Assembly (NCBI RefSeq): GCF_902713615.1
Contig: NC_052176.1
Span: forward strand, 3,472,001 to 3,536,000
DNA length: 64,000 nucleotides
Source: Scyliorhinus canicula
Taxonomy: Eukaryota
Direction: 5' to 3'
In this document: piece by piece, positions 20,131-51,430 of the stretch
How positions within the stretch are numbered: the first letter of the stretch is position 1
How the letters are laid out: the number at the start of each line of letters is the position of its first letter
The notes under the pieces: model-generated
What the model was told of the DNA's origin: nothing
What the model saw: the letters and a program-made list of their open reading frames with translations, nothing else
Databases searched by the model: none
Program-made: the position numbers and the translations under genes

Positions 20131-23100
20131 TTACACCACAGAGGCGCAGGAACTGGCATCTCGCTTTGGAGGTGCATAATGACGTGGGGGACACGGCAGG
20201 CGCATTCTGAAGTGCCCCTCTGCCGGAGTGGCAGCATTGATAGAGGATGCGCGTTGCAGTCCAAGTGGGTCAAACGCTCCGAGGGTAGGGGTTTTCAAGA
20301 GGCCGGATTGGGGACTTCCTCTCTGGGCGGGGGCACTTAGCAGGCCAGGGCGGGCACTCAGTCCCAGAGCAGGACTATTTAACAGGCCAGGGCGGCCACC
20401 CAGGCCAAGAGTGGGGGCGCTTAGCCGGCCAGAGCGGGCACCCATCCCGAGAGTGGGGGCGCTTAACCGGCCACCCATGCCAAGAGTGGGGGCACTTAAC
20501 CGGCTAGAGCGGGCACCCATTCCATGAGCGGGGGTATTTAACCGGCCAGAACGGGCACCCATCCTCAGAGTTGGGGTGTCCAGCAGGCCAGACTGTGCAC
20601 TCATTACCGGGGCGGGGGTACTTAACAGGCTGGGCCGGGCACTCAATCCCGAAGGGGGGGTATTTAACAGGCTGGGGCGGGCACTCAATCCCGAAGGGGG
20701 GGCATTCAACAGGCTAGGGCGGGCACTCAATCCCGAAGGGGGGGCATTCAACAGGCTGGGTCGGACACTCTTTCCCAGGCAGGGTGTTTGTAACAGGCCA
20801 GGTAGGGCAGCCGTTCCCCTAACGGGAGACTGTGCCCTCGTGTCCTTGGCGAGTTTATTTAACGGACGAGACTTGACACTCGTTTCGGTAGCCGGGGGGT
20901 CCAACAGAGCGGACTGGGCGCTCGTTTCTGTCGCAGGGGGGTCCAACGGACCAGACTGGGCGCTCGTTTCCATCGCAGGGGCGTCCGACAGCGCAGTCTG
21001 CGCGCTCGCCTCTGGTGCCGGGGCGTTTTCTGGCCCAGACGGGGCACTCGTTCCCGCAGCTGGGGTAATTAACGGGCCAGACTGGGCGCTTGTTTCCGCA
21101 ACGGGGGCATCTAACAGGCCGGTCTGTGCATTTGTTTCTGCCGCAGGTGTGTCTAATTGACCAGTCGGCACGCTCGTTTCGGCAGCTGGGGTAGTTAAGG
21201 GGCCGGACTGTGCACTACTTCCCGCGGCAGGGGTACTTAACGGGCCAGATTGGGCACCAGTTTCTGTAGCGGGGGTATTTAACCGTCCAGACGGGGCACT
21301 CGGCACTTTAGCAGGGGTATCCAACGCACTGGATTGCTCACTTGTCCCAAGTGTGGAGGCGTTTGATTGGCCGGACTGTGCACTCATTCCTGGGCCGGGG
21401 GTTTTTGACAAGCCGGAATGGACCTTAGTTGCCAGGGCGGGAGATTTTAACCTTCTGGAACCCCGGCCGGAGGTTTTTGACAGGCCGGAACGGACGTGCA
21501 TCCCTGGGCTGGGAGCTTTTAGCAGTCCAGATCGAGGGCTCATTCCCAGGACGGGGGTATTTAACAGGGCAGACCGGGGACTCGTTCCCAGCGTGGGAGT
21601 ATTTAACAGGCCATTTCGGGGATTCTCCCTCATGGCGTGAATATTCAATTGGCCAGATCGGGGATTCTCTCTCAGAGAGGGGGGGCTTAACAAGCCAGAT
21701 CGGGGATTCTCTCTCAGATAGGGGGGGCTTAACAGGCCAGATCGGGGATTCTCTCCCAGATAGGTGGGGCTTAACAGGCCAAATCGGGGATTCTCTCCCA
21801 GAGAGGGGGGGCTTAACAGGCTAGGTCGGGGATTCTCTCCCAGAGAGGGGGGTCTTAACAGGCTAGGTCGGGGATTCTCTCCCAGAGAGGGGGGGCTTAA
21901 CAGGCTAGGTCGGGGATTCTCTCCCAGAGAGGGGGGTCTTAACAGGCTAGGTCGGGGATTCTCTCCCAGAAAGGGGGGTCTTAACAGGCCAGATCGGGGA
22001 TTCTCTCCCAGAGAGGGGGGGCTTAACAGGCCAGATCGGGGATTCTCTCTCAGATAGGGAGGGCTTAACAGGCCAGATCGGGGATTCTCTCCCACAGAGG
22101 GGGGGCTTAACAGGCCAGATCGGGGATTCTCTCCCAGATAGGGGGGGTTTAACAGGCCAGATCGGGGATTCTCTCCCAGATAGGGGGGGTTTAACAGGCC
22201 AGATCGGGGATTCTCTCCCAGAGAGGGGGGGCTTAACAGGCCAGATCGGGGATTCTCTCCCACAGAGGGGGGGCTTAACAGGCTAGGTCGGGGATTGTCG
22301 CCCAGGGCAAGGGTATTTAACAAGTCAGATCGGGGACTTGCTCCCATGGCAGGGTCATTTAACAGGCCAGACCGGGGCCTCGATCCCAGGACAGAGGCAA
22401 TTAAATGGTCTGAACGGCGCTTCACTCCCGGGAAGGGGGCATTTAACAGAGCAGAGCGAGGACTCGCTGCCGGGTCAGGGGCATTTAAGAGGGAAGAACG
22501 GGGAGTTGCTCCCGGGAAGGGGGCATTTAACAGGGCAGAACGAGGACTCGCTCGCGGGGCAGGGGCATTTAACAGGGCGGAACGAAGACTCGCTGCCGGG
22601 GCAGGGGCATTTAAGAGGGCAGAACGGGGAGTTGCTCCCGGGAAGGGGGCATTTAACAGGGCAGAGCGAGGACTCGCTGCCGGGTCAGGGGCATTTAACA
22701 GGGCAGAACGGGGAGTCGCTCCCGGGAAGGGGGCATTTAACAGGGTGGGACGAGGACTCGCTCCCGGGGCATTTAAGAGGGCAGAACGAGGACTCGCTCC
22801 CGGGGCTGGGGCATTTAACAGGCTGGGCAGGATGTTCGCTCCCGGGAAGGGGGTATTTAACAGGCCAGAACGGGGATTCACTCCCAGGGCAGGGGCATGT
22901 AACAGGCCAGATCGGGGATTCGCTCCCGGGGCTGGGGCACTTAACAGGGCGGATCGGGGATTCGCTCCCAGGGCAGGGGGATTTAACAGGCCAGAAGGGA
23001 GACTCTCTCCCCGGAAGGGGGTATTTAACAGGCCAGATCGGGGATTCGCTCCCGGGGCTGGGGCATGTAACAGGCCAGATCGGGGATTCGCTCCCGGGGC

Positions 23101-23689
23101 TGGGGCACTTAACAGGGCGGATCGGGGATTCACTCCCAGGGCGGGGGTTTGTAATAGGCCAAATCGGGGATTCGCTCCCAGGGTGGGGGTACTTAGCAGT
23201 GAGTGCCGTGTCCGCTTGGCGGGGGAGAGTAAATCGTGTGGCAGTGTCCTCTTTGCAGCCTGCCGGTTCTCCAGCGTTGGCGGAGGTAAAGGAAGGCAAG
23301 CGCGATGGTGCGGGAAGCTTCTTTTGGCGAGGTCAGGCGTGAACTGCCTCCCAAGTCCGCGGTCCTTGTGCACATCATTGGCGGGGTCGGGCTGAAATGG
23401 CTCAACGTCTTGCCCACTCGCCTCAACATGTCCGTCGTCCAGGTGATAGCGAGTGTAACTCGACATTTGCTGTCCATACATATCTAGGGAATCACGTGGT
23501 GCCCAGGTGCACTCTGCGGCCTGGTGGTTTGGTCTTCCGCACCGCTGACAATTTCCCACCACACTGCCGACTGATTGGAGCTGGGTGCTTGCCTCAGATG
23601 ACCGAATCCTAATTTTGTTTCAGGTGAAGTCGGCGAGATCCATCCTGTTAATGGCTTTCAGTGCTTCTTCCTGGATGCAAACACATCAC
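20131..23689 (-). CDS. RBM14/RBM4-family paralogue exon: broken RRM2 relic, CCHC knuckle, about 70 x 14-aa Pro/Leu repeats. ORF 23562-20131; first in-frame ATG at 23481 gives 1116 aa
   Basis: Acceptor ctctttctcag|gtgat at 23690/23689. QEEALKAINRMDLADFT*NKIRIRSS aligns to EEDAIQAIANLDEKEFNGTKLRVQLS of the + gene, and CQRCGRPNHQAAEC to CQRCGRQGHQARDC. The frame is uninterrupted for 3.4 kb. C-terminal RMRLPCPPRHY resembles RBM14 RTRLSPPRASY. Confidence 0.7.
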
Positions 23690-27519: not shown

Positions 27520-29735
27520 TTAAAATATAAACTTAAGAGCATCCAATTCTTTCTTTTTCCAATTAAGGGGCAATTTAGCGTGGTCAATTCACGTACCCTG
27601 CACATCTTTGGGTTGTGGGGGCGAAACCGATGCAGAAACAGGGAGAATGTGCAAACTCCACATGGACAGTGACCCGGGGGCAGGATCGAACCTGGGTCCT
27701 CAGTGCCCTGAGGCAGCAGTGCTAACCACTGCACCACCCCGAAAATTGTATTAAATTGAATGAGTGGTGTATATCGTAAAATGGAAAATGTCCTGAACAA
27801 AAATATATATTTTTTAAAAGTCAACCACATTGCTGTGTGTGTGTGTGTGTGTGTGGGGGGGGGGGGGGGGCCTAGAATCAAATGTCGGTCAGACCAAGGC
27901 AAGGACGGCAGATTTCCTAGCCTAAATTATTTCATTAGCAAACCAGATGTGTTTTTTTTTAAATTGGCAATCAATGATCGTTATCGAGACCAGCTTTATA
28001 AATTCTGTTAATAAAATCTGGATTAATTTCCACTGGCTGCTGTGGTGAGGTCTGAACTCTCTTTCTATGCCATTATCAACATTAACAATCGAATGGCGAT
28101 GTTCTCATGTCTCCGCTGCCCTTGTCCTTCTAGGTGGTGTGAAAATTTGAAAACAGATACGTGGCCTTTGTTAGCCCAACGCATGGATTACGGGGATAGG
28201 GTGGAGGTGTGGTCTTAGATAGGGTGTTCTTTCCAAGAGCTGGTGAAGCCTCAATGGGCTGAATGGCCTCCTTCTGCACTGTAAATTCTATGATAATCTA
28301 TGAATACAAGAACAGGGAGGTTAAGACTGAGCTGTATAAAACGGTGGTTAGGCCACAGCGGGAGTACTGCGTACAGTTCTGGTCGGCACGCTACAGGAAG
28401 CAAGTGACTTGACGGGCGAGGGTGCAGAGGAGATTCACCAGGATGTTGCCTGGGCTGGAGCGCTTCAGCTATCGCAGAGACTGGGCTTGTTTTCCTAGGA
28501 GCAGAGAAGACCTTCAGGGGCTGGTTGAGCACAGTGGGCCAAGACAGCTGGCTTGTAATGCAGAGCAAGGCCAGCAGCGTGGGTTCAATTGCTGTACCGG
28601 CCTCCCCGAACAGGGTCCGGAATGTGGCGACTAGGGGCTTTCACAGCAACTTCATTGAAGCCTATTTGTGACAATAAGCAATTATTATTAAAGCACAAGA
28701 GCAGAATTAAGGCATTTGTCCCATCGGGTCTTCTCCACCATTCAATCACGGCAGATATGTTTCTCATCCCCATTCCCCTGCCTTCTCCCCATAACCTCTC
28801 GATAGTCAAGAACCTTTCTATGTCTTTTTAAAAAATATATATAAAGTTAGAGTATCCAATTCTTTTTTTATTCCAACTGTGGGGCAATTTAGTGTGGCCA
28901 ATTTTCCTACCCATCACATCTTTTGTGTTGTGGGGGCGAGACTCCTGCAACACGGGGAGAATGTGCAAACTCCTCCCGGGGCCGGGATCGAACTGGGGTC
29001 CTCTTTGCCATGAGGCGATAGTGCTAACCACTGCGCCACCGCATCTACCTCTATCTTTTTTTTTAAATTTAGATTATCCAATTATTTTTTCCAATTAAGG
29101 GGCAATTTAGCATGGCCAATCCACCTACTCTGCACATTTTTTGGGTTGTGAGGGCGCAACCCACGCAGACACGGGGAGAATGTGCAAACTCCACACGGAC
29201 AGTGAGCCAGAATCGAACCTGGGACCTCAGCGCCGTGAGGCGGTTGTGCTAACCACTAGGCCACCGTGCTGCCCAGTCTACCTCTATCTTAAAGACACGC
29301 CGTGACCAGACTTCCACAGCCTTTGGCGGCAACGGGTTCTGCAGATTCACCACCCTCTGGCTGAAGAAATTCCTCCTCGCCTCAGTTTTAAAGGATTGTC
29401 CCTTTAGTCTGAGGCTACGCCCTCGGGTTATAATCTTTATTGCCACAAATAGGCTGACATTAACGCTGCAATGAAGTTACTGTGAAAATCCCCTCGTCGC
29501 CACATTCCGGCGCCTGTTCGGGTACACGGAGGGGGAATTCAGAATGTCCAATTCACCTGACAAGCACGTCTTTCGGGACTTGTGGGAGGAAACCGGAGCG
29601 CCCGGAGGAAACCCACGGTGAGAACGTGCAGACTCCACACAGACAGTGACCAGAGCCCGGGAATCAAACCCGGGCACCTGGCGCTGTGAAGCAACAGTGC
29701 TAACCCACCGGGCTACCGTTCTGGTTTCTCCAACT
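27520..29735. mobile_element. Dense cluster of SINEs and CR1 fragments
   Basis: SINEs at 27520, 28517, 28826, 29056 (TSD TCTACCTCTATCTT) and 29427. CR1 pieces RVQRRFTRMLPG (+, about 28300-28515) and RNFFSQRVVNL (-, about 29280-29430). Confidence 0.75.
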
Positions 29736-29899
29736 AGCGGAAAGGCCCACCGCAAGGGTGCCCGATCGAGGCACGTCAAATCACGAGGGGCGCAGGTAGG
29801 GCAGAGAGGAGGGAAATCATTCCACCACCCCATGCAGAGGGATTGATAACCGGGTGGCTGCGGATAAGGGGGGAGGGAGGAGGGAAAAGTCTCTTCCCA

Positions 29900-31560
29900 T
29901 CCAGAAAGGGGGGGGGGGGGGGGGCAGAGAATATGGGGAACCTTTTCCCACCCAGAGAGGGGGAATAAACCTCTGCCTACCCAGAGAGAGGGAAAGGGGG
30001 GGGGGGGGGCAGAAAATGAGGAATTAACCCTCTGCCTACCCAGAGAGAGGGAAGGGGGTAGGGAATGAGGGAATAACCCTCTGCCTACCCAGTGAGGGGG
30101 ATGGGGGGCAGAGAATGAGGGAATAAATCCTATGCCTACCCAGAGAATGAGGGAATAAACCCTCTGCCTACCCAGAGAGAGGGGTAAGGAATGAGGGAAT
30201 AACCCTCTGCCTACCCAGAAATAGGGAGGTAAGGGGTAGGGAATGAGGAATTAACCATCTGCCTACCCAGAGGGGGTAGGGAATGAGGGAATAACCCTCT
30301 GCCTACCCAGAGAGGGTAGGGAATGAGGAAATAACCCTCTGCCTACCCAGTGAGAGGGATGGGGGGCAGAGAATGAGGGAATAAATCCTATGCCTACCCA
30401 GAGAGAGGGGCAGGGAATGAGGGAATAACCCTCTGCCTACCCAGAGGGGGTAGGGAATGAGGGAATAACCCTCTGCCTACCCAGAGAGGGTAGGGAATGA
30501 GGGAATAACCCTCTGCCTACCCAGTGAGAGGGATGGGGGGCAGAGAATGAGGGAATAACCCTCTGCCTACCCAGAGAGGGGGGGGGGGGGGGTAGGGAAT
30601 GAGGGAATAACCCTCTGCCTACCCAGAGAGGGGGGGGGGGGTAGGGAATGAGGGGATAACCCTCTGCCTACCCAGTGAGAGGGATGGGGGGCAGAGAATG
30701 AGGGAATAACCCTCTGCCTACCCAGAGAGGGGGGGGGGGGGGTAGGGAATGAGGGAATAACCCTCTGCCTACCCAGAGAGGGGGGGGGGGGTAGGGAATG
30801 AGGGAATAACCCTCTGCCTACCCAGAGAGGGGGGGGGGTAGGGAATGAGGGAATAACCCTCTGCCTACCCAGAGAGGGGAGGGGGTAGGGAATGAGGGGA
30901 TAACCCTCTGCCTACCCAGTGAGAGGGATGGGGGGCAGAGAATGCGGGAATAACCCTCTGCCTACCCAGAAAGGGGAGGGGGTAGGGAATGAGGGGATAA
31001 ATCCTCTGCCTACCCAGAGAATGAGGGAATAAATCCTCTGCCTATCCAGAGAATGAGGGAATAAACCCTCTGCCTACCCAGAGAGGGAAGGGGGTAGGGA
31101 ATGAGGAATTAACCCTCTGCCTACCCAGAGAGAGGGGGATGGGGGGCAGAGAATGAGGGAATAAACCCTCTGCCTACCCAGAAAGGGGAGGGGGGGGGGG
31201 GGGGTAGGGAATGAGGGAATAAACCTCTGCCTACCCAGAAAGGGGAGGGGGGGGGGTAGGGAATAAACCTCTGCCTACCCAGAAAGGGAAGGGGGTAGGG
31301 AATGAGGAATTAACCCTCTGCCTACCCAGAGAGAGGGGGATGGGGGGCAGAGAATGAGGGAATAAACCCTCTGCCTACCCAGAAAGGGGAGGGGGGGGGG
31401 GGGGGGGGCAGAGAATGAGGGAATAAACCCTCTGCCTACCCAGAGAGGGAAGGGGGGTAGGGAATGAGGAATTAACCCTCTGCCTACCCAGAGAGAGGGA
31501 CGAGGGTGGGGAATGAGGAATAAACCCTCTGCTTACCCAGAGAGAGGGAAGAAGGGATTA
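29900..31560 (+). repeat. G-rich minisatellite, about 40-55-bp variable unit
   Basis: Core GGGAATGAGGGAATAACCCTCTGCCTACCCAGAGAG with variable poly-G. Confidence 0.93.
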
Positions 31561-31570
31561 AAGCTCTCAC

Positions 31571-31640
31571 ATTCGACGCCGCCGTCCTCTCCGTCCCGCC
31601 GCCGGTTGGAAAACACGACTCAAAATGGCCGCCGCCCTGC
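31571..31640 (-). other. Probable non-coding first exon of the minus-strand RBM paralogue
   Basis: Minus strand reads GGCGGCCATTTTGAG...GGCGTCGAAT|GTGAGAG: a YY1-type 5'UTR motif, then a donor at 31571/31570. The 5' end is approximate. Confidence 0.6.
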
Positions 31641-31953
31641 CTTCCTCCCGCCCGCCGCCCTTTGAGCGACAGCGGGCCGGACCAATCGGCTGGCCGGCCG
31701 CGACCCTCCCGGCCAATCGGGACCCCCATCCGGCGGGGGGAGCGGAAAGCCCGCCTCCCCGGCCGGAAGCGGAAGGGGCGGGCTCCGGCGGGCGGCACGT
31801 CCTCCCATTGGTCGGGCCGGAGCCGCGCGGCCGCCGATTGGCCGGCGGCGCCGTCAGTCGGTTTGGTGGTGGGCGGGGCTTCTCCTTCGGACGGACGAAC
31901 GGCGGGGACCGGCGCCATTTTGTGTGGGTGTGTGTGGGGAGGGTGAAAACAAA
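31571..31953. promoter_or_regulatory. Bidirectional CpG-island promoter
   Basis: YY1 CAAAATGGC 31621; CCAAT 31682 and 31713; tandem ETS CCGGAAGCGGAAG 31763-31775; GC boxes 31775 and 31871; ATTGG 31807 and 31837; YY1 GCCATTTTG 31914. CpG-dense, no TATA box. Confidence 0.8.
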
Positions 31954-32284
31954 ATGAAGATCTTCGTGGGCAACATCCCCAGCGAGAGCACGGTGGACGA
32001 GCTGCGGGCCCTGTTCGAGTACTACGGCGCCGTGCGCGAGTGCGACATCATCCGGCACTACGGCTTCGTGCACATGGAGGGCGCCGAGGAGGCGGCGCAG
32101 GCCATCGCCGCCCTGCACCAGTACGAGCTGCACGGCCAGAAGCTCAACGTGGCCGAGTCGCGGCCCCGGCCCGCCGCCGTCACCAAGGTCTACGTGGGCA
32201 ACCTGGCCCCCGGCTGCAGCAACCAGGAGCTGCGGGCCCGCTTCGAGGAGTACGGCCGGGTGCAGGAGTGCGACATCGTCAAAG
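31954..32284 (+). CDS. RBM14: RBM14 (RBM4/lark family) coding exon 1: RRM1 and first half of RRM2
   Basis: ATG in aaaATGA context. MKIFVGNI...YGFVHM...SRPRP...KVYVGNL...ECDIVK; donor G|GTGAG (phase 1). Start, linker and intron position match recalled human RBM14. Automated annotation may call it RBM4-like. Confidence 0.85.
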
Positions 32285-32294
32285 GTGAGGCCGG

Positions 32295-33740
32295 CCCTCC
32301 GCTGAGGGGGGACCTCACACTCTCCTCCCTCCGCTGAGGGGGGGCCTCACACTCTCCTCCCTCCGCTGAGGGGGGCCTCACACTCTCCTCCCTCCGCTGA
32401 GGGGGGGCCTCACACTCGCCTCCCTCCGCTGAGAGGGGGCCTCACACTCTCCTCCCTCCATTGAGGGGCCCCTCACACTCAGTCGCTCCATTGAGGGGCC
32501 CCTCACACTCAGTCCCTCCATTGAGGGGCCCCTCACACACAGTCCCACCATTGAGGGGCCCCTCACACACACAGTCCCTCCATTGAGGGGCCCGTCACAC
32601 ACAGTCCCTCCATTGAGGGGCCCCTCACACAGTCCCTCCATTGAGGGGGCCTCACACTCAGTCCCTCCATTGAGGAGCCCCTCACACTCAGTCCCTCCAT
32701 TGAGGGGCCCCTCACACTCAGCCCCTCCATTGAGGGGCCCCTCACACTCAGCCCCTCCATTGAGGGGCCCCTCACACACACAGTCCCTCCATTGAGGGGC
32801 CCCTCACACAGTCCCTCCATTGAGGGAGACCTCACACTCTATCCCTCCCTCCCTCAGTCCCTCCATTGAAGAGGCCTCACTCAGTCTCTCCATTGAGGGG
32901 GACCTCACACACAGTCCCTCCATTGAGGGGCCCTCACACTCTGTCCCTCCATTGAGGGGGGCCTCATACTCTCAGTCCCTCCACTGAGGGGGCATCACAC
33001 TCACAATCCCTGCATTGAGGGGGCCTCACACTCAGTCCCTCCATTGAGGGGCCCCTCACACTCAGTCCCTCCATTGAGGGGCCCCTCACACACACAGTCC
33101 CTCCATTGAGGGGCCCCTCACACAGTCCCTCCATTGAGGGGGACCTCACACTCTATCCCTCCCTCCCTCAGTCCCTCCATTGAAGAGGCCTCACTCAGTC
33201 CCTCCATTGAGGGGGACCTCACACTCTGTCCCTCCATTGAGGGGGGCCTCATACACTCAGTCCCTCCACTGAGGGGGCATCACACTCACAGTCCCTGCAT
33301 TGAGGGGGCCTCACACTCCGTCCCTCAGTCCCTCCATTGAGGGGGCCTCACTCAGACCCTCCATTGAGTGGGCCTCACACTGTCCCTCCAATGAGTGGGG
33401 TCTCACAGTCCCTCCATTGAGGGGGCCTCACACTCAGTCCCTCCAATGAGGGGGCCTCACACTGTCCTTCCATCCCTCAGTCCCTCCATTGAGGGAGCCT
33501 CACACTCCCTCCATTGAGGGGGTCTCACAGTCCCTCCATTGAGGGGGTCTCACAGTCCCTCCATTGAGGGGGGTCTCACAGTCCCTCCATTGAGGGGGGT
33601 CTCACAGTTCCTCCAAAGAGGGGGCGGTTTCACAGTCCCTCAGTTGATGGGGGTCTCAGTCCCTCCATTGAGGGGCCCCTCACACTCAGTCCTTCCATTG
33701 AGAGGGCCTCACACACTCAATCCCTCGATTGAGGGGGAGC
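32295..33740 (+). repeat. About 30-bp palindromic minisatellite in RBM14 intron 1
   Basis: Unit GTCCCTCCATTGAGGGGCCCCTCACACTCA. Confidence 0.93.
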
Positions 33741-34984
33741 CCTTCAATTTAGGGATCTTTTTTGCACGTAGAATTTTTTTAATGTTCCATCTGAGAGACG
33801 GCGCCTCCTGCAGTACGGCTGAGTGAGATTGTGGCAAGATGAGTGGGAACAGAAATCCTGGGGAGACGTGCAAACACCAGAAAATGGCGAGGAAGGGAAA
33901 AGGCTACAAATTAAATTGAAACGCTGGCAAACCCCACCGGGGCTGTTAATTTCAGGACAAATTTCTGTCGCCGCCCCAGCCACACTGCAGCATCTCATAA
34001 GTTCTTACATTTCTAACTTGAACCTTCGCTTTCTAACAGCTTACTTCCTCCTCGATGCAAGTCAGCAGTGGTGACTTGTGCCGTTCTCTCGCGTTAGATT
34101 TTACTGTTCCCAGTCAGTCTGCCTTAGACTGATGTTACAATCCCAGACCTGATCCCAACAGTGGCGAGGATACTGGTCAGAAACCCCAATATTTTAATTT
34201 AATTTTATAAGACTGAGGAAAGGACATCTCGCTCCAGGAGTGATTTCACAAAGAAATAGGGGTGTGATAGGTTAAATCAAACCTTATTACTAACACTGTG
34301 TTAAAATATCTCCACATCACACCAGAAAATAACTTGCAATTACTCCTTGAACTATGCCAATCAACACAGTGAATACAATGCCCTTAACTGCTATCTTTAT
34401 TATCACGCAAACCATGAGGAAAGAACATCTCTGCTCTCAATCCATTTTGACTGTCAATGGCGCATAGGAATATCAGATTGAGAAATCGTAGATTATAACA
34501 TCAGTAGGTGTGTTCTTAACCTGGTGCTGTAAGACTTCTTTGCGAGAGAGAGAGGTCTCTTGACACTGCTGTAGTAAAAATGATCTGACTCCTCTCAGAA
34601 CCATGCAGAAACTCTGGCCATATCTCTTCAGAAGCTGCTTCTGCTCGCCTTCTAATCGCCTTCTAAAGTCTGATCTGCTTTGAAAGACTGCCAATCTCCC
34701 TACAGACATATCTTTAACTGGACGACAGAGGGCAAAGTGCGTAATGTCTGTTAACAGCTTCATCTAGAACTCCCCATACCCGCTTTTAGTACGAAATGCC
34801 TGACACCGTAGCTCCACCCAGTAGTGACATCATTTTACGGAGCTGAATCTAATTAACTCGACAGGAAATCCCCTTAATGCAAACAAACCTGAATTAGCCC
34901 AAGCTTTTGATGATGGCTTCATTGCACCCCACCCCCGGCTCCCAAAACCTTTGTTGTCTTTCAAACTAGGATTTAATTTGAAAC

Positions 34985-35232
34985 AGTCCCCCTCGGACTG
35001 ATCTGTTCCCTGTAAGAACACTATTCACGACGCCCTATGCCGCTCTTGCTCATGTATTTGCTTTGTTTGGCCCCTTGTTCCGCACTGTAATCAATCACTG
35101 TTTGTTGACGTACTATTTGTCAATGTTCTCTGTTGATTATTCTTTTTGTCTACTATGTACGTACTGTGTACGTTCCCTCGGCCGCAGAAAAATACTTTAC
35201 ACTTTACTTCGATACATAAATCAAATCAAACA
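34985..35232 (+). mobile_element. LINE 3' UTR fragment (Rex1/Babar-like)
   Basis: Ends AAATACTTTACACT...ACATAAATCAAATCAAA. The family assignment is from recall. Confidence 0.45.
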
Positions 35233-36062
35233 TGACTACAGCACACACTCTAACCCCAGACTTTTAACCCCCACTGCGCCAAATGCCTGCAATCGATCTG
35301 AAATTCCTACATACATCGCGCTCGAGGCCTTCCTGACGGGCATGGCTCAGCGACCTTGATTCCAGAGTCTCGCGTTGCTCCCACCGATTTTCTGTCCTTT
35401 GGGGTTTGGAGTCGCGAACCTTCATTCCAGAAGCCAGATAATTGAGATCGAGTTCCGTGCTGCAGGAAAGCTGTTGGCCAGGAAAGAAGGCAATGCCCAT
35501 GTTGTAGTGACATACCAGTAGGGGAGCCGAGGTAACTTTGACAATTTGTAAAAGGGGGCGCATGCGATGATAGAAAGCTGGCGAGTCGGAGGAGCAATTT
35601 TGCCCTTTTCCAACCGGGACACATCGTTTCTCCCGAATCCAGAGACCTTGAATTGTATGAAATAGAAACACGCAAAGTGTTGCCGATGCTGGAAGTATCC
35701 AGCAGCCCTGGCAACACCTGTGGAGAGAAGGGGGGGGGGGTTAACATTAAACTCGCGCATGGACTCCGTGCCAACTCTGTTTCTCCCTCCACAGATCCTG
35801 CCTGACCCGTATTTTGTTTACATTTGACGACCGTGGGTTTTGTGTGTATGTAGAACGTAGAAACGGGCTGTTGGGCCCTTCTGTGCCGCACCAGCCTCCT
35901 CCTCATCTTCCCTGCGCACTTGTCTTAACTGTCCCTGAACGGTCAACGGCCGTCATGTGCAGAGGAGTGTTCGGTGCATCTCCTCCCCCGGCAGTCTGCC
36001 AGCGTCGGTCCCGTAAGATTCTGTTCACGCGACGTTTAACCTCTGTTCTTCCCGCCTTCCAG

Positions 36063-36558
36063 ATTACGCCTTTGTGCACATGGAAAAGGAGGAAGACGCG
36101 ATCCAAGCGATTGCCAATCTGGACGAGAAGGAATTCAACGGGACCAAGCTCAGGGTGCAGCTCTCCCGGTCGACCTACGGGAAGTCTGGCGGGCAGCGGG
36201 ATGTCTGCCAGCGCTGTGGAAGGCAGGGGCACCAGGCGAGAGATTGCCACTCCGCCCGCCATAATCAGTCCAACCCGTACCAGCTCCAGTCTCAATACTA
36301 CCCCTCTTACTATTCGTATTACGATTACGACTACGGCCACGGCTCCTATTACGACTATTACGAAGATTACCAGGCCGCAGGTGCTGCCGCAAGTTACGCG
36401 CCGCTCGACTACGTGAGGGAGAGGAGTCCGAGCCGCCTGAGCACGCCCGCGCCGGCGGCGGCGGCCAACAGCTGCACTCTGTACGAACGCACCCGCCTAT
36501 CGCCGCTATCGCTGCCAAAATATCAGAATGAGAAGTTCGTAGACGATAGCATCAGTAG
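36063..36558 (+). CDS. RBM14: RBM14 coding exon 2: rest of RRM2, CCHC knuckle, Tyr-rich segment, YERTRLSP
   Basis: Acceptor cttccag|AT completes D-YAFVHMEKE. Contains CQRCGRQGHQARDC and YERTRLSP; donor AG|GTATGT (phase 2). Confidence 0.85.
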
Positions 36559-38933: not shown

Positions 38934-38985
38934 GTATGATCAGTTTGACTATGATAATACCACCGACACCCGCTATGCCCAATGA
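38934..38985 (+). CDS. RBM14: RBM14 coding exon 3 (R|YDQFDYDNTTDTRYAQ*)
   Basis: Strong acceptor ctttttctcttag. Phase matches exon 2, giving an 879-nt CDS (292 aa). Confidence 0.7.
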
Positions 38986-43934: not shown

Positions 43935-46900
43935 GAATGGGATTAGACTGGGGATTTATGAAGTGATGAGGGGGAATGTGGAAATAGACTGGGGGGGGGG
44001 GGTACAGAAGGTTGTGGGGAGAGTGGGATTGGACTGGGTGGGATATTAAAGGGGGTGGAGAGAGGGTGGGATTAAAAGGTGCGGGGAGTGAGCAGGGAGA
44101 TTGAGATTAGGCTGGGTGGGATATGAAAGGGTGCAGGGAGCGAGGAGGAGAGTGAGGTTGGACTGGGTGGGATATTAAAGGGTGTGGGGAGTGAGGGGTT
44201 AGACTGGGTGGGATATTAAGGTGCGGAAGGGAGGGATAGAGTGGGGTTAGACTGGGTGGGATATTAAAGGGTGTGGGGAGGGAGGGGAGAGTGGGATTAG
44301 ACTGGGTGGGATATTAAAGGGTGAGGGGGAGAGTGGGATTAGACTGGGATATTAAAGGGTGTGGGGAGGGAGGGGAGAGTGGGATTAGACTGGGTGGGAT
44401 ATTAAATGGTGAGGGGAGAGTGGTTTAGACTGGGTGGGATATGAAGGAGCGCTGGCAGTGAGGGAAGATTGCTTTAGACTGCGTGGGATATTAAAAGGTG
44501 TGGGGAGAGTGGGATTAGACGGTGGGATATTAAAGGGTGAGGGGGGGAGAGTGGGATTAGACTGGGTGGGATATTAAAGGGGGTGGAGAGAGTGGGATTA
44601 AAAGGTGCGGGGAGTGAGCAGGGAGATTGAGATAAGGCTGGGTGGGATATGAAAGGGTGCAGGGAGCGAGGAGGAGAGTGAGGTTGGACTGGGTGGGATA
44701 TTAAAGGGTGTTGGGAGTGAATAGGGTTAGACTGGGTGGGATATTAAGGTGAGGGGAGTGAGGGGAAGAGTGGGATTAGACTGGGTGGGATATTAAAGGG
44801 TATGGGGAGGGAGGGGAGAGTGGGATTAGACTGCGTGGGATATTAAAGGGTGAGGGGAGAGTGGTTTAGACTGGGTGGGATATTAAATGGTGAGGGGAGA
44901 GTGGTTTAGACTGGGTGGGATATTAAAGGGTGAGGGAAGAGTGGGTTTAGACTGGGTGGGATATTAGGGAGCACTGGCAGTGAGGGAAGATTGGTTTAGA
45001 CTGGGTGGGATATTAAAGGGTGAGGGGGAGAGTGGGATTAGACTGGCTGGGATATGAAAGGGTGTGGGGAGTGAAGGGGAGAATGGGATCAGATTGGGAG
45101 AGGGATTAGACTGGGTGGGATATGAAAGGGTGCGGGGAGTGAAGGGGAGAGTGGGATTAGACTGGGTGGGATATTAAAGGGTGCGGGGATGATGGGGGAG
45201 AGTGGGATTAGACTGGGTGGGATATTAAAGGGCGAGGGGGAGAGTGGGTTTAGCCTGTCCGGGGAGGCTGGTACGGGAATCGAACCGTGCTGCTGGCCTG
45301 CTTGGTCTGCTTTAAAAGCCAGCGATTTAGCCGAGTGAGCTAAACCAGGGTGAGGGGGAGAGCGGGATTAGACTGGGTGGGATATTAAAGGGTGCGGGGG
45401 AGTGGGATTGGACTGGGTGGGATATTAATGGGTGAGGCGGAGAGTGGGGTTAAACTGGGTGGGATATTTAAGGGTGCAGGGAGTGAGGGGGAGAGTGGGA
45501 TTAGACTGGGTGGGATATTAAAGGGTGCGGGGATGAGGGGGAGAGTGGGATTAGACTGGGTGGGATATTAAAGGGTGCGGGGAGTAGGGGGAGAGTGGGT
45601 TTAGACTGGGTGGGATATTAAAGGGTGCGGAGTGAGGGGGGAGAGTGGGATTAGACTGGCTGGGATATGAAAGGGTGCGGGGAGTGAGGGGGAGAATGGG
45701 ATCAGATTGGGGGAGTGGGATTAGACTGGGTGGGCTATTAATGGTAAGGGGGAGAGCGGGATTAGACTAGGTGGGATATTAATGGATGAGGCGGAGAGTG
45801 GGGTTAAACTGGGTGGGATATTCAAGGGTGTGGGGAGTGAGGGGGAGAGTGGGATTAGACTGGGTGGGATATTAAAGAGTACGGGAAGTGAGGGGGGAGT
45901 AGGATTAGACTGGGTGGGATATTAAAGGGTGCGGGGAGTGAGGGGGAGAGGGGGATTAGACTGGGGGGGTTATTAAAGGGTGCGGGGAGTGAGGGGAGAG
46001 TGGGATTAGACAGGGTGGGATATTAAAGGGTGCGGGGAGTGAGGGGGAGAGTGGGATTAGACTGGGTGGGATATTAAAGGGTGAGGGGGGAGTGGGATTA
46101 GACTGGGTGGGATATTAAAGGGTGTGGGGAGTGAGGGGGAGAGCGGGATTAGACTGGATGGGATATTAAAGGGTGTGGGGAGTGAGGGGGAGAGTGGGAT
46201 TAGACTGGGTGGGATATTAAAGGGTGAGGGGAGAGTGGGATTAGACTGGATGGGATATTAAAGGGTGCGGGGAGTGAGGGGGAGAGGGGGATTAGACTGG
46301 GTGGGATATTAAAGGGTGTGGGGAGTGAGGGGGATTAGACTGGGTGGGATATTAAAGGGTGAGGGGAGAGTGGGATTAGACTGGATGGGATATTAAAGGG
46401 TGCGGGGAGTGAGGGGGAGAGGGGGATTAGACTGGGTGGGATATTAAAGGGTGTGGGGAGTGAGGGGGATTAGACTGGGTGGGATATTAAAGGGTGAGGG
46501 GGAGAGTGGGATTAGACTGGGTGGGATATTAAAGGGTGTGGGGAGTGAGGGGGAGAGTGGGATTAGACTGGGTGGGATATTAAAGGGTGTGGGGAGTGAG
46601 GGGGAGAGTGGGATTAGACTGGGTGAGATATTAAAGGGTGCGGGGAGTGAGGGGAGAGTTGGGATTAGACTGGGTGGGATATTAAAGGGTGTGGGGAGTA
46701 TGGGGAGAGTGGGATTAGACTGGGTGGGATATTAAAGGGTGTGGGGAGTGAGGGGGGAGAGTGGGATTAGACTGGGTGGGATATTAAGGGTGTGAGGGAG
46801 TGAGGGGGAGAGTGGGATTAGACTGGGTGGGATATTAAAGGGTGCGGGGAGTGAGGGGGAGAGTGGGATTAGACTGGGTGGGATATTAAAGGGTGTGGGG

Positions 46901-48962
46901 AGTGAGGGGGAGAGTGGGATTAGACTGGGTGGGATATTAAAGGGTGCGGGGAGTGAGGGGGAGAGTGGGATTAGACTGGGTGGGATATTAAAGGGTGTGG
47001 GGAGTGAGGGGGAGAGTGGGATTAGACTGGGTGGGATATTAAAGGGTGTGGGGAGTGAGGGGGAGAGTGGGATTAGACTGGGTGGGATATTAAAGGGGTG
47101 GGGAGGGAGGGGAGAGTGGATTAGACTGGGTGGGATATTAAAGGGTGCGGGGAGTGAGGGGGAGAGTGGGATTAGACTGGGTGGGATATTAAAGGGTGCG
47201 GGGAGTGAGGGGGGAGAGTGGGATTAGACTGGGTGGGATATTAAAGGGTGGGGGAGTGAGGGGGAGAGTGGGATTAGACTGGGTGGGATATTAAAGGGTG
47301 TGGGGAGTGAGGTGGAGAGTGGGATTAGACTGGGTGGGATATTAAAGGGTGTGGGGAGTGAGGGGGAGAGTGGGATTAGACTGGGTGGGATATTAAAGGG
47401 TGTGGGAGTGAGGGGGAGAGTGGGATTAGACTGGGTGGGATATTAAAGGGTGCGGGGAGTGAGGGGGAGAGTGGGATTAGACTGGGTGGGATATTAAAGG
47501 GTGCGGGGAGTGAGGGGGAGAGGGGGATTAGACTGGGTGGGATATTAAAGGGTGCGGGGAGTGAGGGGAGAGTGGGATTAGACTGGGTGGGATATTAAAG
47601 GGTGCGGGGAGTGAGGGGGAGAGTGGGATTAGACTGGGTGGGATATTAAAGGGTGCGGGAGTGAGGGGAGAGTGGGATTAGACTGGGTGGGATATTAAAG
47701 GGTGTGGGGAGTGAGGGGGAGAGTGGGATTAGACTGGGTGGGATATTAAAGGGTGCGGGGAGTGAGGGGGAGAGTGGGATTAGACTGGGTGGGATATTAA
47801 AGGGTGTAGGGAGTGAGGGGGGAGAGTGGGATTTGACTGGGTGGGATATTAAAGGGTGCGGGGAGTGAGGGGGAGAGTGGGATTAGACTGGGTGGGAATT
47901 TAAAGGGTGTGGGGAGTGAGGGGGGAGAGTGGGATTAGACTGGGTGGGATATTAAAGGGTGCGGGGAGTGTGGGGGGAGTGGGATTAGACTGGGTGGGAT
48001 ATTAAAGGGTGTGGGGAGTGAGGGGGAGAGTGGGATTAGACTGGGTGGGATATTAAAGGGTGCGGGGAGTGTGGGGGGAGTGGGATTAGACTGGGTGGGA
48101 ATTAAAGGGTGCGGGGAGAGTGGGATTAGACTGGGTGGGTTATTAAAGGGTGAGGGGGGAGAGTGGGATTAGACTGGGTGGGATATTAAAGGGTGTGGGG
48201 AGTGAGGGGGGAGTGGGATTAGACTGGGTGGGATATTAAAGGATGTGGGGAGTGGGGGAGAGTGGGATTAGACTGGGTGGGATATTAAAGGGTGGGGGGA
48301 GTGAGGGGGAGAATGGGGTTAGACTGGGTGGGATATTAAAGTGTGGGGAGTGAGGGGGAGAGTGGGATTAGACTGGGTGGGATATTAAAGGGTGAGGGGG
48401 AGAGGGGGGATTAGGCTGGGTGGGATATTAAAGGGTGAGGGGAGAGTGGGATTAGACTGGGTGGGATATTAAAGGGTGCGGGGAGTGAGGGGGAGTGGGA
48501 TTAGACTGGGTGGGATATTAAAGGGTGTGGGGAGTGAGGGGGAGTGGGATTAGACTGGGTGGGATATTAAAGGGGGCGGGGAGTGAGGGGGAGAGTGGGA
48601 TTAGACTGGGTGGGATATTAAAGGGTGAGGGGGGGGGAGAGAGGGATTAGACTGGGTGGGATATTAAAGGGTGCGGGGAGTGAGGGAGGAGAGTGGGGTT
48701 AGACTGGGTGGGATATTAAAGGGTGCGGGAGTGAGGGGGGGAGTGGGATTAGACTGGGTGGGATATTAAAGGGTGCGGGGAGTGAGTGGGGTTAGACTGG
48801 GTGGGATATTAAAGGGTGTGGGGAGTGAGGGGGAGAGTGGGATTAGACTGGGTGGGATATTAACGGGTGAGGGGGGAGAGGGTGGGATTAGACTGGGTGG
48901 GATTTTAACGGGTGAGGGGGGGAGAGGGTGGGATTAGACTGGGTGGGATATTAAAGGGTGCG
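43935..48962 (+). repeat. About 51-bp G-rich satellite, 5 kb, upstream of CCS
   Basis: Unit GGGATTAGACTGGGTGGGATATTAAAGGGTGCGGGGAGTGAGGGGGAGAGT; SINE fragment inserted at 45253-45348. Confidence 0.96.
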
Positions 48963-49140
48963 GGCGTTTGTTTCGAGTGAGTGCACACAGCCAGAGTCAG
49001 ATTGCTACAGGGGGCAGTGTCCCTTTAAGGATTCTGAGCACAAAATTGGGGAGGTATTTTAACTGAGTGGCAACAGCTGGGAGGGATTTGCTGCCGGGTC
49101 AGAGCTCGTGGAGGGGAAAGGTTCAAGTGGATCACTCAAT

Positions 49141-50539: not shown

Positions 50540-51430
50540 GTCTCTGTAACCTCCTCCAGCCCCTACAACCCTCCCTATCTCTGTAACCTCCTCCAGCCCC
50601 TACAACCCTCCCTATCTCTGTAACCTCCTCCAGCCCCTACACCCCTCCCTATCTCTGTAACCTCCTCCAGCCCCAACAACCCTCCCTATCTCTGTAACCT
50701 CCTCCAGTCCCCTACAACCCTCCCTATCTCTGTAACCTCCTCCAGCCCCTACACCCCTCCCTATCTCTGTAACCTCCTCCAACCCTCACAACCCTCCCTA
50801 TCTCTGTAATCTCCTCCAGCCCCTACAACCGTCCCAATCTCTGTAACCTCCTCCAGAGCCCCTACAACTCTCCCTATCTCTGTAACCTCCTCCAACCCCT
50901 GCAACCCTCCCTATCTCTGTAACCTCCTCCAGCCCCTACACCTCTCCCTATCTCTGTAACCTCCTCCAGAGCCCCTACAACTCTCCCTATCTCTGTAACC
51001 TCCTCCAACCCCTGCAACCCTCCCTATCTCTGTAACCTCCTCCAGCCCCTACACCTCTCCCTATCTCTGTAACCTCCTCCAGCCCCTACACCCCTCCCTA
51101 TCTCTGTAACCTCCTCCAGCCCCTACAACCTTCCCTATCTCTGTAACCTCCTCCAGCCACTACAGCCCTCCCTATCTCTGTAACCTCCTCCAGCCCCTAC
51201 AACCCTCCCTATCTCTGTAACCTCCTCCAGCCCCAACCCTCCCTATCTCAGTAACTCCTCCAGCCCCTACAACCCTCCCTATCTCTGTAACCTCCTCCAG
51301 CCACTACACCCCTCCCTTATCTCTGTAACCTCCTCCAGCCCCTACAACCCTCCCTTATCTCTGTAACCTCCTCCAGCCCCTACAACCCTCCCTTATCTCT
51401 GTAACCTCCTTCAGCCTCTACAACCCTCCC
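50540..51430 (+). repeat. 37-bp minisatellite, same family as 13940-14860
   Basis: Same unit. Confidence 0.95.

Follow-up and report, generated by a model that had tools for sequence, protein, structure and literature searches.

Vertebrate bidirectional promoters of the CpG-island class have start sites less than 1 kb apart and carry motifs for GABPA/NRF2, NRF1, NFY and YY1 (Lin et al. 2007, Collins et al. 2007, as summarised in PMC3082894). The same source reports that divergent promoters are enriched in GABPA, NFY and YY1 motifs and that bidirectional promoters have a mirror base composition. A bidirectional promoter between head-to-head paralogues is described for COL4A1/COL4A2 (Poschl et al. 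1988, Burbelo et al. 1988, as listed in the preprint 10.1101/2023.10.18.563013), and the bidirectional promoter of mouse Mrps12/Sarsm contains a CCAAT array bound by NF-Y (Zanotto et al. 2007, as cited in PMC3082894). Double CCAAT modules of NF-Y fall into spacing classes of 26-30 and 36 bp (PMC4889920), and YY1 binds sites overlapping start sites, such as adeno-associated virus P5 (PMC3332055, PMC3491394). Here we present the analysis of a promoter at positions 31571-31953 of the window, a stretch of 64,000 nt of the catshark Scyliorhinus canicula (NC_052176.1, 3,472,001-3,536,000, forward strand) to which all coordinates refer unless another locus is named. It lies between two head-to-head RBM14-like genes, termed the plus and the minus gene after their strands; its two halves are termed the plus and the minus arm.

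The region is confirmed as a divergent promoter, with the minus paralogue transcribed from it. With a probability of about 0.7 we read it as a TATA-less CpG-island promoter common to both paralogues, whose symmetry stems from an ancient inverted duplication of gene plus promoter. The mirror arrangement would have arisen because the duplication copied the gene together with its promoter, each arm being a copy of a single ancestral unit. Descent would thus explain the striking mirror symmetry of the motifs, and lineages that keep, remodel or lose one partner would provide a natural comparison for which elements serve which direction.

Like the vertebrate bidirectional CpG-island promoters, the catshark promoter serves head-to-head genes with transcript ends at most about 300 bp apart, is TATA-less, carries ETS-, NF-Y- and YY1-type motifs and has a skew flip. 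Unlike in that class, the genes are paralogous and the halves appear to be homologous copies, so that the symmetry would be inherited and not assembled; NRF1 belongs to the motif set of the class and was not noted here. COL4A1/COL4A2 is similar in that paralogues have been kept for very long head to head about a short common promoter. It differs in gene family and in that the catshark minus gene no longer has its founding domains or its first coding exon but retains the promoter arm, and subunit stoichiometry offers no obvious reason for co-expression of the RBM14-like pair. Precisely spaced CCAAT boxes in both orientations, with spacings of 30-33 bp near the known classes, recall Mrps12/Sarsm and the double CCAAT modules. 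In contrast to Mrps12/Sarsm the catshark NF-Y sites are predicted and form two opposed pairs, each with a GTCRCTCAA block 16 nt away, which is not among the described partner sites. Consensus fit and plus RNA ends within about 13 nt resemble YY1 sites of the initiator type; another factor could read the 9-mer GCCATTTTG. Among the bidirectional CpG-island promoters with NF-Y, YY1 and ETS motifs, and among head-to-head paralogue pairs, this promoter is an unusually clean and deeply conserved member.

Divergent transcription and mirrored elements

Four RNA runs (X4, X9, X15 and X22) were mapped on 31480-32380, and stable processed transcripts were found in both directions. Plus contigs start at 31901 (X4, depth 118), 31913 (X9) and 31943 (X15) and are spliced from 32284 to 36063 in all three runs; X22 raw reads on the plus side begin from 31914. 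These reads appear unstranded and carry no direction information, and no start site at which many molecules begin was called among them. On the minus side a 620-nt X4 contig (depth 37.5) aligns to 31567-31604 with six further unaligned letters (up to 31610), and the loose end that precedes 31567 corresponds, as reverse complement, to the start of the exon at 23689. The junction 31571|23689, deduced from this loose end and not from a listed joint, is canonical, with GT at 31570-31569 and AG at 23691-23690, GTGA fitting both sides. Because the sequence AAC|C upstream of the aligned end of the contig is no acceptor, the exon at 31571 is a first and not an internal one. The first-pass annotation, made from the letters of the window, had predicted minus-strand transcription from the promoter region and exactly this splice; the single X4 contig bears out both.

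Minus RNA extends to 31604 or beyond and plus RNA begins at 31901 or earlier, which puts no more than about 297 bp between the start regions; across 31635-31882 X4 shows zero depth. Contig ends cannot fix true 5' ends. The main minus-exon stretch 23230-23689 is present in 18 runs of 7 studies, and both main exons were found in RNA-like runs of several common studies. Co-expression of the two genes, as proposed at first, holds in so far as both transcripts occur in one run (X4); on co-regulation the data comprise this co-occurrence and the overlapping study lists. The further proposal that each 5' leader contains GCCATTTTG is borne out for the plus gene, whose contigs from 31901 and 31913 include the motif; the contig of the minus gene stops at 31604-31610, short of its motif.

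No TATA box was found in the island 31560-32290, and the GC skew changes sign across the promoter centre, from -0.33 to +0.54. Every motif of the first-pass list was recovered where it had been placed (Table 1). All four CCAAT boxes have NF-Y-type flanks (RRCCAATSR); their spacings of 31 and 30 bp adjoin the two classes of PMC4889920, with boxes at least 19 bp apart. Both YY1-type sites match the consensus AANATGGN(C/G) quoted for YY1 in PMC3491394, as AAAATGGCC in the minus arm and AAAATGGCG in the plus arm. Compared with 5000 dinucleotide shuffles of the 383-bp stretch 31571-31953, the CCAAT count (4 observed, 0.57 expected, P=0.003) and the inverted pair of the GCCATTTTG 9-mer (0 of 5000 shuffles) are non-random. 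GC boxes are enriched as well (6 observed, 2.5 expected, P=0.03), and ETS cores alone show no significant enrichment (P=0.09). Across the whole window the 9-mer occurs four times, with 0.31 expected.

The symmetry, originally placed at about 31765, proved tighter than stated. Four element pairs, CCGCCC/GGGCGG, TTTGAGCGAC/GTCAGTCG and both CCAAT pairs, agree to within half a base on a common dyad axis at 31762. The centre of the inner GC-box pair (31749/31777) is 31766.5 and that of the YY1-type pair 31771.5. The first two of these pairs and AGCCCGCC/GGCGGGCT are mirrored elements that the earlier list did not contain. No Rfam match was found in 29000-34000. The GTCRCTCAA block could be assigned to no factor site; in plus arms a TGACG half-site lies inside it. 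The ER (endoplasmic reticulum)-stress element has the form CCAAT-N9-CCACG, and it was rejected as an identity for the composite ATTGG-N11-GTCRCTCAA because orientation and spacing do not fit. Also rejected were a recent palindrome at sequence level, a hairpin and gene conversion between the arms, since the inverted repeats are short and non-collinear (I1 joins the outer-left to the inner-right box, I5 the opposite combination) and the arm alignment reaches a z of only about 3.

Probable homology of the arms and paralogue history

Comparison loci with DNA were those of whale shark (L001), the sevengill shark Heptranchias (L002), thorny skate (L003) and sawfish (L004). Together with the catshark, both arms are recognisable in all five elasmobranchs, and a five-way alignment of half-promoters, with the minus arms reverse-complemented, has the same block order throughout: GC box, ATTGG, ATTGG, GTCRCTCAA and GCCATTTTG. 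The distance between the two ATTGG boxes is 30-33 bp in the four arms of catshark and Heptranchias and 40-43 bp in the remaining plus arms. In every arm that has both, the GTC block lies 16-17 nt from the proximal ATTGG; in four of five plus arms it lies 60-62 nt from the YY1-type site. Heptranchias has an exact mirror axis of its own (L002, 9713-9714). Aligned to each other, the arms score z=3.0 and 2.6 in inverted orientation versus 1.2 and 1.8 in the direct-orientation control. Arms that can hardly be aligned outside the blocks should be the expected remnant of an old duplication under constraint at motif level.

The plus-arm pair of NF-Y-type boxes is conserved in all five species, as is the minus-arm YY1-type site, whose surrounding 16 nt are identical in catshark and whale shark. 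Whale shark, skate and sawfish retain the minus YY1-type site together with the GTCRCTCAA block, and no RBM-like coding sequence was found in these three on the minus side within 10 kb. The minus-arm CCAAT boxes are intact in Scyliorhinus and Heptranchias (2 of 2), halved in whale shark and sawfish (1 of 2) and lost in skate (0 of 2). Heptranchias and sawfish have a central ETS-type site, which also occurs in the expanded central region of whale shark, and in Scyliorhinus, Heptranchias and sawfish the two arms stay within about 290 bp. Tandem amplification of the plus-arm ATTGG-GTCA module is seen in whale shark, with YY1-type sites 791 bp apart. There the centre (L001, 9200-9770) is enlarged by ATTGG-plus-GTCA copies with ETS-type CCGGATGT sites, and a divergent gene model of 196 aa without RBM similarity is annotated from 9167.

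Heptranchias carries a complete paralogue on the minus side, with two RRMs, a CCHC knuckle and 14-residue repeats (982 aa, named RBM4.1-like by NCBI). Its first exon opens with MKIFVGN, at a distance of 469 bp from the ATG of the plus gene; it codes for RRM1 and one half of RRM2 and matches plus exon 1 at 57% identity, sharing the exon break K|DYAFVHM. The remaining half of RRM2, the knuckle and the RSALLNxP repeats are encoded by the second exon, the orthologue of the catshark minus exon. The protein also has LYERLRLSP. A complete minus paralogue in this shark means that the inverted gene duplication predates the split of the two great shark lineages. The annotation of Heterodontus has a divergent gene of 888 aa, with CCS downstream. 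It is likely, as judged from these comparisons, that a whole gene was duplicated in inverted orientation and that the catshark minus copy then lost its RRMs.

The first-pass annotation had instead taken the pair for the two modules of RBM14, split between two genes. This does not hold, as the plus gene is complete (two RRMs, CCHC, Tyr-rich region, YERTRLSP), and as a history it is ruled out by the Heptranchias minus orthologue, which keeps both RRMs, the knuckle and the repeats. Its reference to RBM14 as such has some footing in the RRM grouping with mammalian RBM14 and in the YERTRLSP tail. In RRM-region trees the elasmobranch plus genes, the Heptranchias minus gene and mammalian RBM14 fall together, and RBM4, RBM4B, RBM4.1/4.2 and other shark RBM4-like genes fall outside. 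Support for this grouping is 97/92 on 190 aa, where the RBM14 rows have RBM4-derived tails, versus 93/58 with clean RRM-only rows, and the branches are long. Plus genes and the Heptranchias minus gene form a clade at 66/74; the branching order inside the RBM14-type clade is not settled by the RRM trees. The catshark plus protein (at aa 251) and the RBM14 proteins of pangolin and takahe have YERTRLSP, which both RBM4-type proteins checked lack. There is thus moderate support for placing both shark genes with RBM14 rather than with RBM4.

Tetrapod RBM14 (CoAA) has further likenesses to the shark genes, namely the MKIFVGN start, promoter elements and CCS as a neighbour, which among the sharks is the case in Heterodontus. 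Takahe RBM14 has GCCGCCATTTTGTGG about 90 nt before the ATG and GCCATTTTGTGG in the leader, and pangolin RBM14 has three clustered ATTGG boxes plus GCCATTCC; no mirrored arm was seen in either. From these elements the half-module looks like the ancestral promoter of RBM14 type, from sharks to birds and mammals. In mammals, too, CCS adjoins RBM14. No relevant literature on an RBM14 promoter with CCAAT boxes was found. In contrast to tetrapod RBM14 there are two head-to-head copies in sharks, and both shark genes have a zf-CCHC, which is missing in pangolin and takahe RBM14; they are therefore called RBM14-like and not RBM14, and the knuckle looks like an ancestral feature that was retained. NCBI names the elasmobranch genes RBM4B-like, RBM4-like or RBM4.1-like (P0001-P0008, P0076). 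RRM tree, YERTRLSP, promoter element and CCS neighbour suggest that the names RBM4B-like and RBM4.1-like hide a closer tie to RBM14.

Proposed mechanism and alternative explanations

Read from the centre outward, the ancestral unit would consist of a GC box, a pair of NF-Y-type CCAAT boxes spaced by 30-33 bp, a 16-bp spacer, GTCRCTCAA and the YY1-type GCCATTTTG, which would coincide with the transcription start or follow it closely. NF-Y bound to the CCAAT pairs would open the island and place the start some 60-90 bp away, the YY1-type site may act as the initiator that fixes the direction of each arm, and the central ETS and GC boxes could serve both arms. Each CCAAT pair would mainly serve its own gene, because those of the minus arm have decayed in the species in which no minus gene was seen. 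Coupling between the genes is probably modest and limited to the open island and the centre held in common, and a tight geometry between the arms appears dispensable.

Several points weigh against the duplicated promoter as described. The NF-Y, YY1 and ETS sites are predictions from the letters, and with the weak similarity of the arms outside the motif blocks the two might also have converged on a common factor grammar. In rays and whale shark the search for a minus gene covered 10 kb. The minus 5' exon occurs in one X4 contig, with nothing in X9 and X15 and 0 raw reads in X22; this contig ends at least 11 nt short of the minus GCCATTTTG (31629-31621), and true starts are fixed by contigs for neither arm. 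A tree that joins the minus gene with RBM14 instead of with the plus genes is not rejected (AU, approximately unbiased, test p=0.50).

An integrated bidirectional promoter, the coupling of the first-pass annotation, in which the elements of both arms act on both genes and selection keeps the symmetry for co-expression of the RRM-bearing and the RRM-less protein at a fixed ratio, is unlikely. It would fit the joint presence of both transcripts in one run, with depths near 37 and 118, and the arms held within about 290 bp in Scyliorhinus, Heptranchias and sawfish. The minus YY1-type site and GTCRCTCAA that persist in rays without a visible minus gene would likewise fit a role for the plus gene. 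The decay of the minus-arm CCAAT boxes where no minus gene was found speaks against it, the 791 bp of whale shark mean that tight geometry is not required, and the RRMs retained by the Heptranchias minus protein mean that complementary halves cannot be the ancestral reason for the pairing. Because both arms have persisted throughout elasmobranch history with unchanged internal spacings, and the minus YY1-type site and GTCRCTCAA survive in rays and whale shark with no detectable minus paralogue, we also entertain, with considerable doubt, that the palindrome itself is the functional unit and that the mirrored arm is needed for the plus gene, for example for island edges or direction. If so, the series of 2/2, 1/2 and 0/2 CCAAT boxes would be a natural dissection of the assignment of elements to directions.

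It is improbable that the minus RNA is ordinary upstream antisense RNA of the plus CpG-island promoter, spliced into a decaying pseudogene exon, with an arm devoid of function. Two in-frame stops in the catshark RRM remnant with no AUG before the knuckle, a minus 5' exon in a single run, and an AATAAA within about 45 nt after the minus arm of skate, as expected for unstable antisense RNA, would all agree with this. Against these stand the canonical junction, a minus contig depth of about one third of that of the plus gene, the minus exon in 18 runs of 7 studies, and a frame open for more than 1100 codons, orthologous to the 982-aa Heptranchias protein with the same repeats. Moreover, it is precisely the two gene-bearing species that retain both minus CCAAT boxes and the exact spacings. 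That the motifs, short and GC-rich, cluster by chance in a CpG island may practically be dismissed: ETS cores and GC boxes, taken by themselves, are not or only weakly above shuffle expectation, but the CCAAT count (P=0.003) and the 9-mer pair (0/5000) are not accounted for, and the cross-species alignments, in which ordered blocks and spacings recur in five species and both arms, already contradict it.

Feature coordinates, genes and tandem arrays

A summary of the features is given in Table 1.

Table 1. Positions of promoter elements, exons and flanking arrays in the Scyliorhinus canicula window.
Feature	Position	Strand	Details
CpG island	31560-32290		GC 0.71 (range 0.71-0.73), CpG observed/expected 1.05 (1.05-1.08)
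YY1-type/initiator-like site, minus arm	31621-31629	-	CAAAATGGC forward = GCCATTTTG on minus strand
GC box, minus arm	31648-31653	-	CCGCCC; mirrors 31871-31876 (inverted repeat I7)
GTCRCTCAA block, minus arm	31661-31670	-	TTTGAGCGAC; 16 nt from proximal CCAAT box
NF-Y-type CCAAT pair, minus arm	31682-31686 and 31713-31717	-	31 bp apart
Dyad centre	31749-31784	.	Inverted GC boxes 31749-31756 and 31777-31784 around tandem ETS/GABP-type pair
Inner GC-box mirror pair	31749 / 31777		AGCCCGCC / GGCGGGCT
Tandem ETS/GABP-type pair	31763-31775		CCGGAAGCGGAAG; CCGGAAG + CGGAAG, abuts GGGGCGGG at 31775-31782
NF-Y-type ATTGG pair, plus arm	31807 and 31837 (span 31807-31841)	+	30 bp apart
GTCRCTCAA-type block, plus arm	31853-31860	+	GTCAGTCG; 16 nt from proximal ATTGG
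GC box, plus arm	31871-31876	+	GGGCGG
Conserved core block, plus arm	31886-31924	+	Ends in GGCGCCATTTTGT; plus transcripts begin within; 13 bases invariant in 5 species
YY1-type site, plus arm	31914-31922	+	GCCATTTTG
Plus-gene first exon	31901-32284	+	Coding sequence from 31954; RRM1 and first half of RRM2; donor AAAG|GTGAGG
Plus-gene second coding exon	36063-36558	+	Second half of RRM2, CCHC knuckle, Tyr-rich region, YERTRLSP
Plus-gene last coding exon	38934-38985	+	Product 292 aa in total
Minus-gene non-coding first exon	31571-31610	-	X4 contig; true 5' end between ~31605 and 31640
Minus-gene 5' splice site	31565-31570	-	AAT|GTGAGA; overlaps ATG 31573-31571
Minus-gene main exon	20131-23689	-	Dead RRM2 half, CCHC knuckle, ~1100 aa of 14-residue repeats
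49-nt tandem array	29939-31549	.	Start of minus-gene first intron, 21 nt after donor
30-nt tandem array	32295-33736	.	Start of plus-gene first intron, 10 nt after donor

The description of a short RRM-bearing plus protein facing a long RRM-less minus protein was borne out for the catshark, with 292 aa and two RRMs on one side and a repeat open reading frame (ORF) on the other. Plus exon 2 is 96% identical to a Scyliorhinus torazame protein. At least two other paralogues with different 5' leaders are expressed; their contigs partly match plus exon 1 (31955, 32057-32208), so that the catshark expresses several genes of the family.

The minus repeat ORF (1162 aa) stays open for more than 1100 codons, and the RRM2 remnant before it has in-frame TGA codons at 23688-23686 and 23622-23620. 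No RRM1 exon was found between the exon at 23689 and the promoter. A protein search with the 1162-aa ORF gave no match at E<=0.001 among 8000 candidates, which is uninformative on orthologues and probably an effect of repeat composition. The ATG at 31573-31571 sits 56 nt from the minus GCCATTTTG, and the Heptranchias minus start codon 58 nt from its own; this hints that the 5' splice site derives from the former start-codon region, converted upon loss of the RRM exon. In the spliced minus mRNA an AUG is formed at the junction, with an immediate stop, followed by a 13-codon upstream ORF (23689-23480). The first in-frame AUG of the long ORF comes after the CCHC knuckle, which would be translated only via a non-AUG start.

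The two arrays of Table 1 are minisatellites that flank the promoter island on either side. The 49-nt array has 12 AATAAA on its plus strand and 32 GGTAGG on its minus strand and could keep plus-strand read-through from running into the promoter. In Heptranchias, too, the first intron of the plus gene has an array close to its start, with a 48-nt unit (L002, 10379-11038). Farther downstream in the catshark window there are large strand-skewed arrays at 44182-48964, 50541-52687, 55734-62444 and 62931-63805, with units of 51 nt (98 copies), 37 nt, 17 nt, 32 nt (about 225 copies) and 69 nt and with four N gaps inside or beside them.

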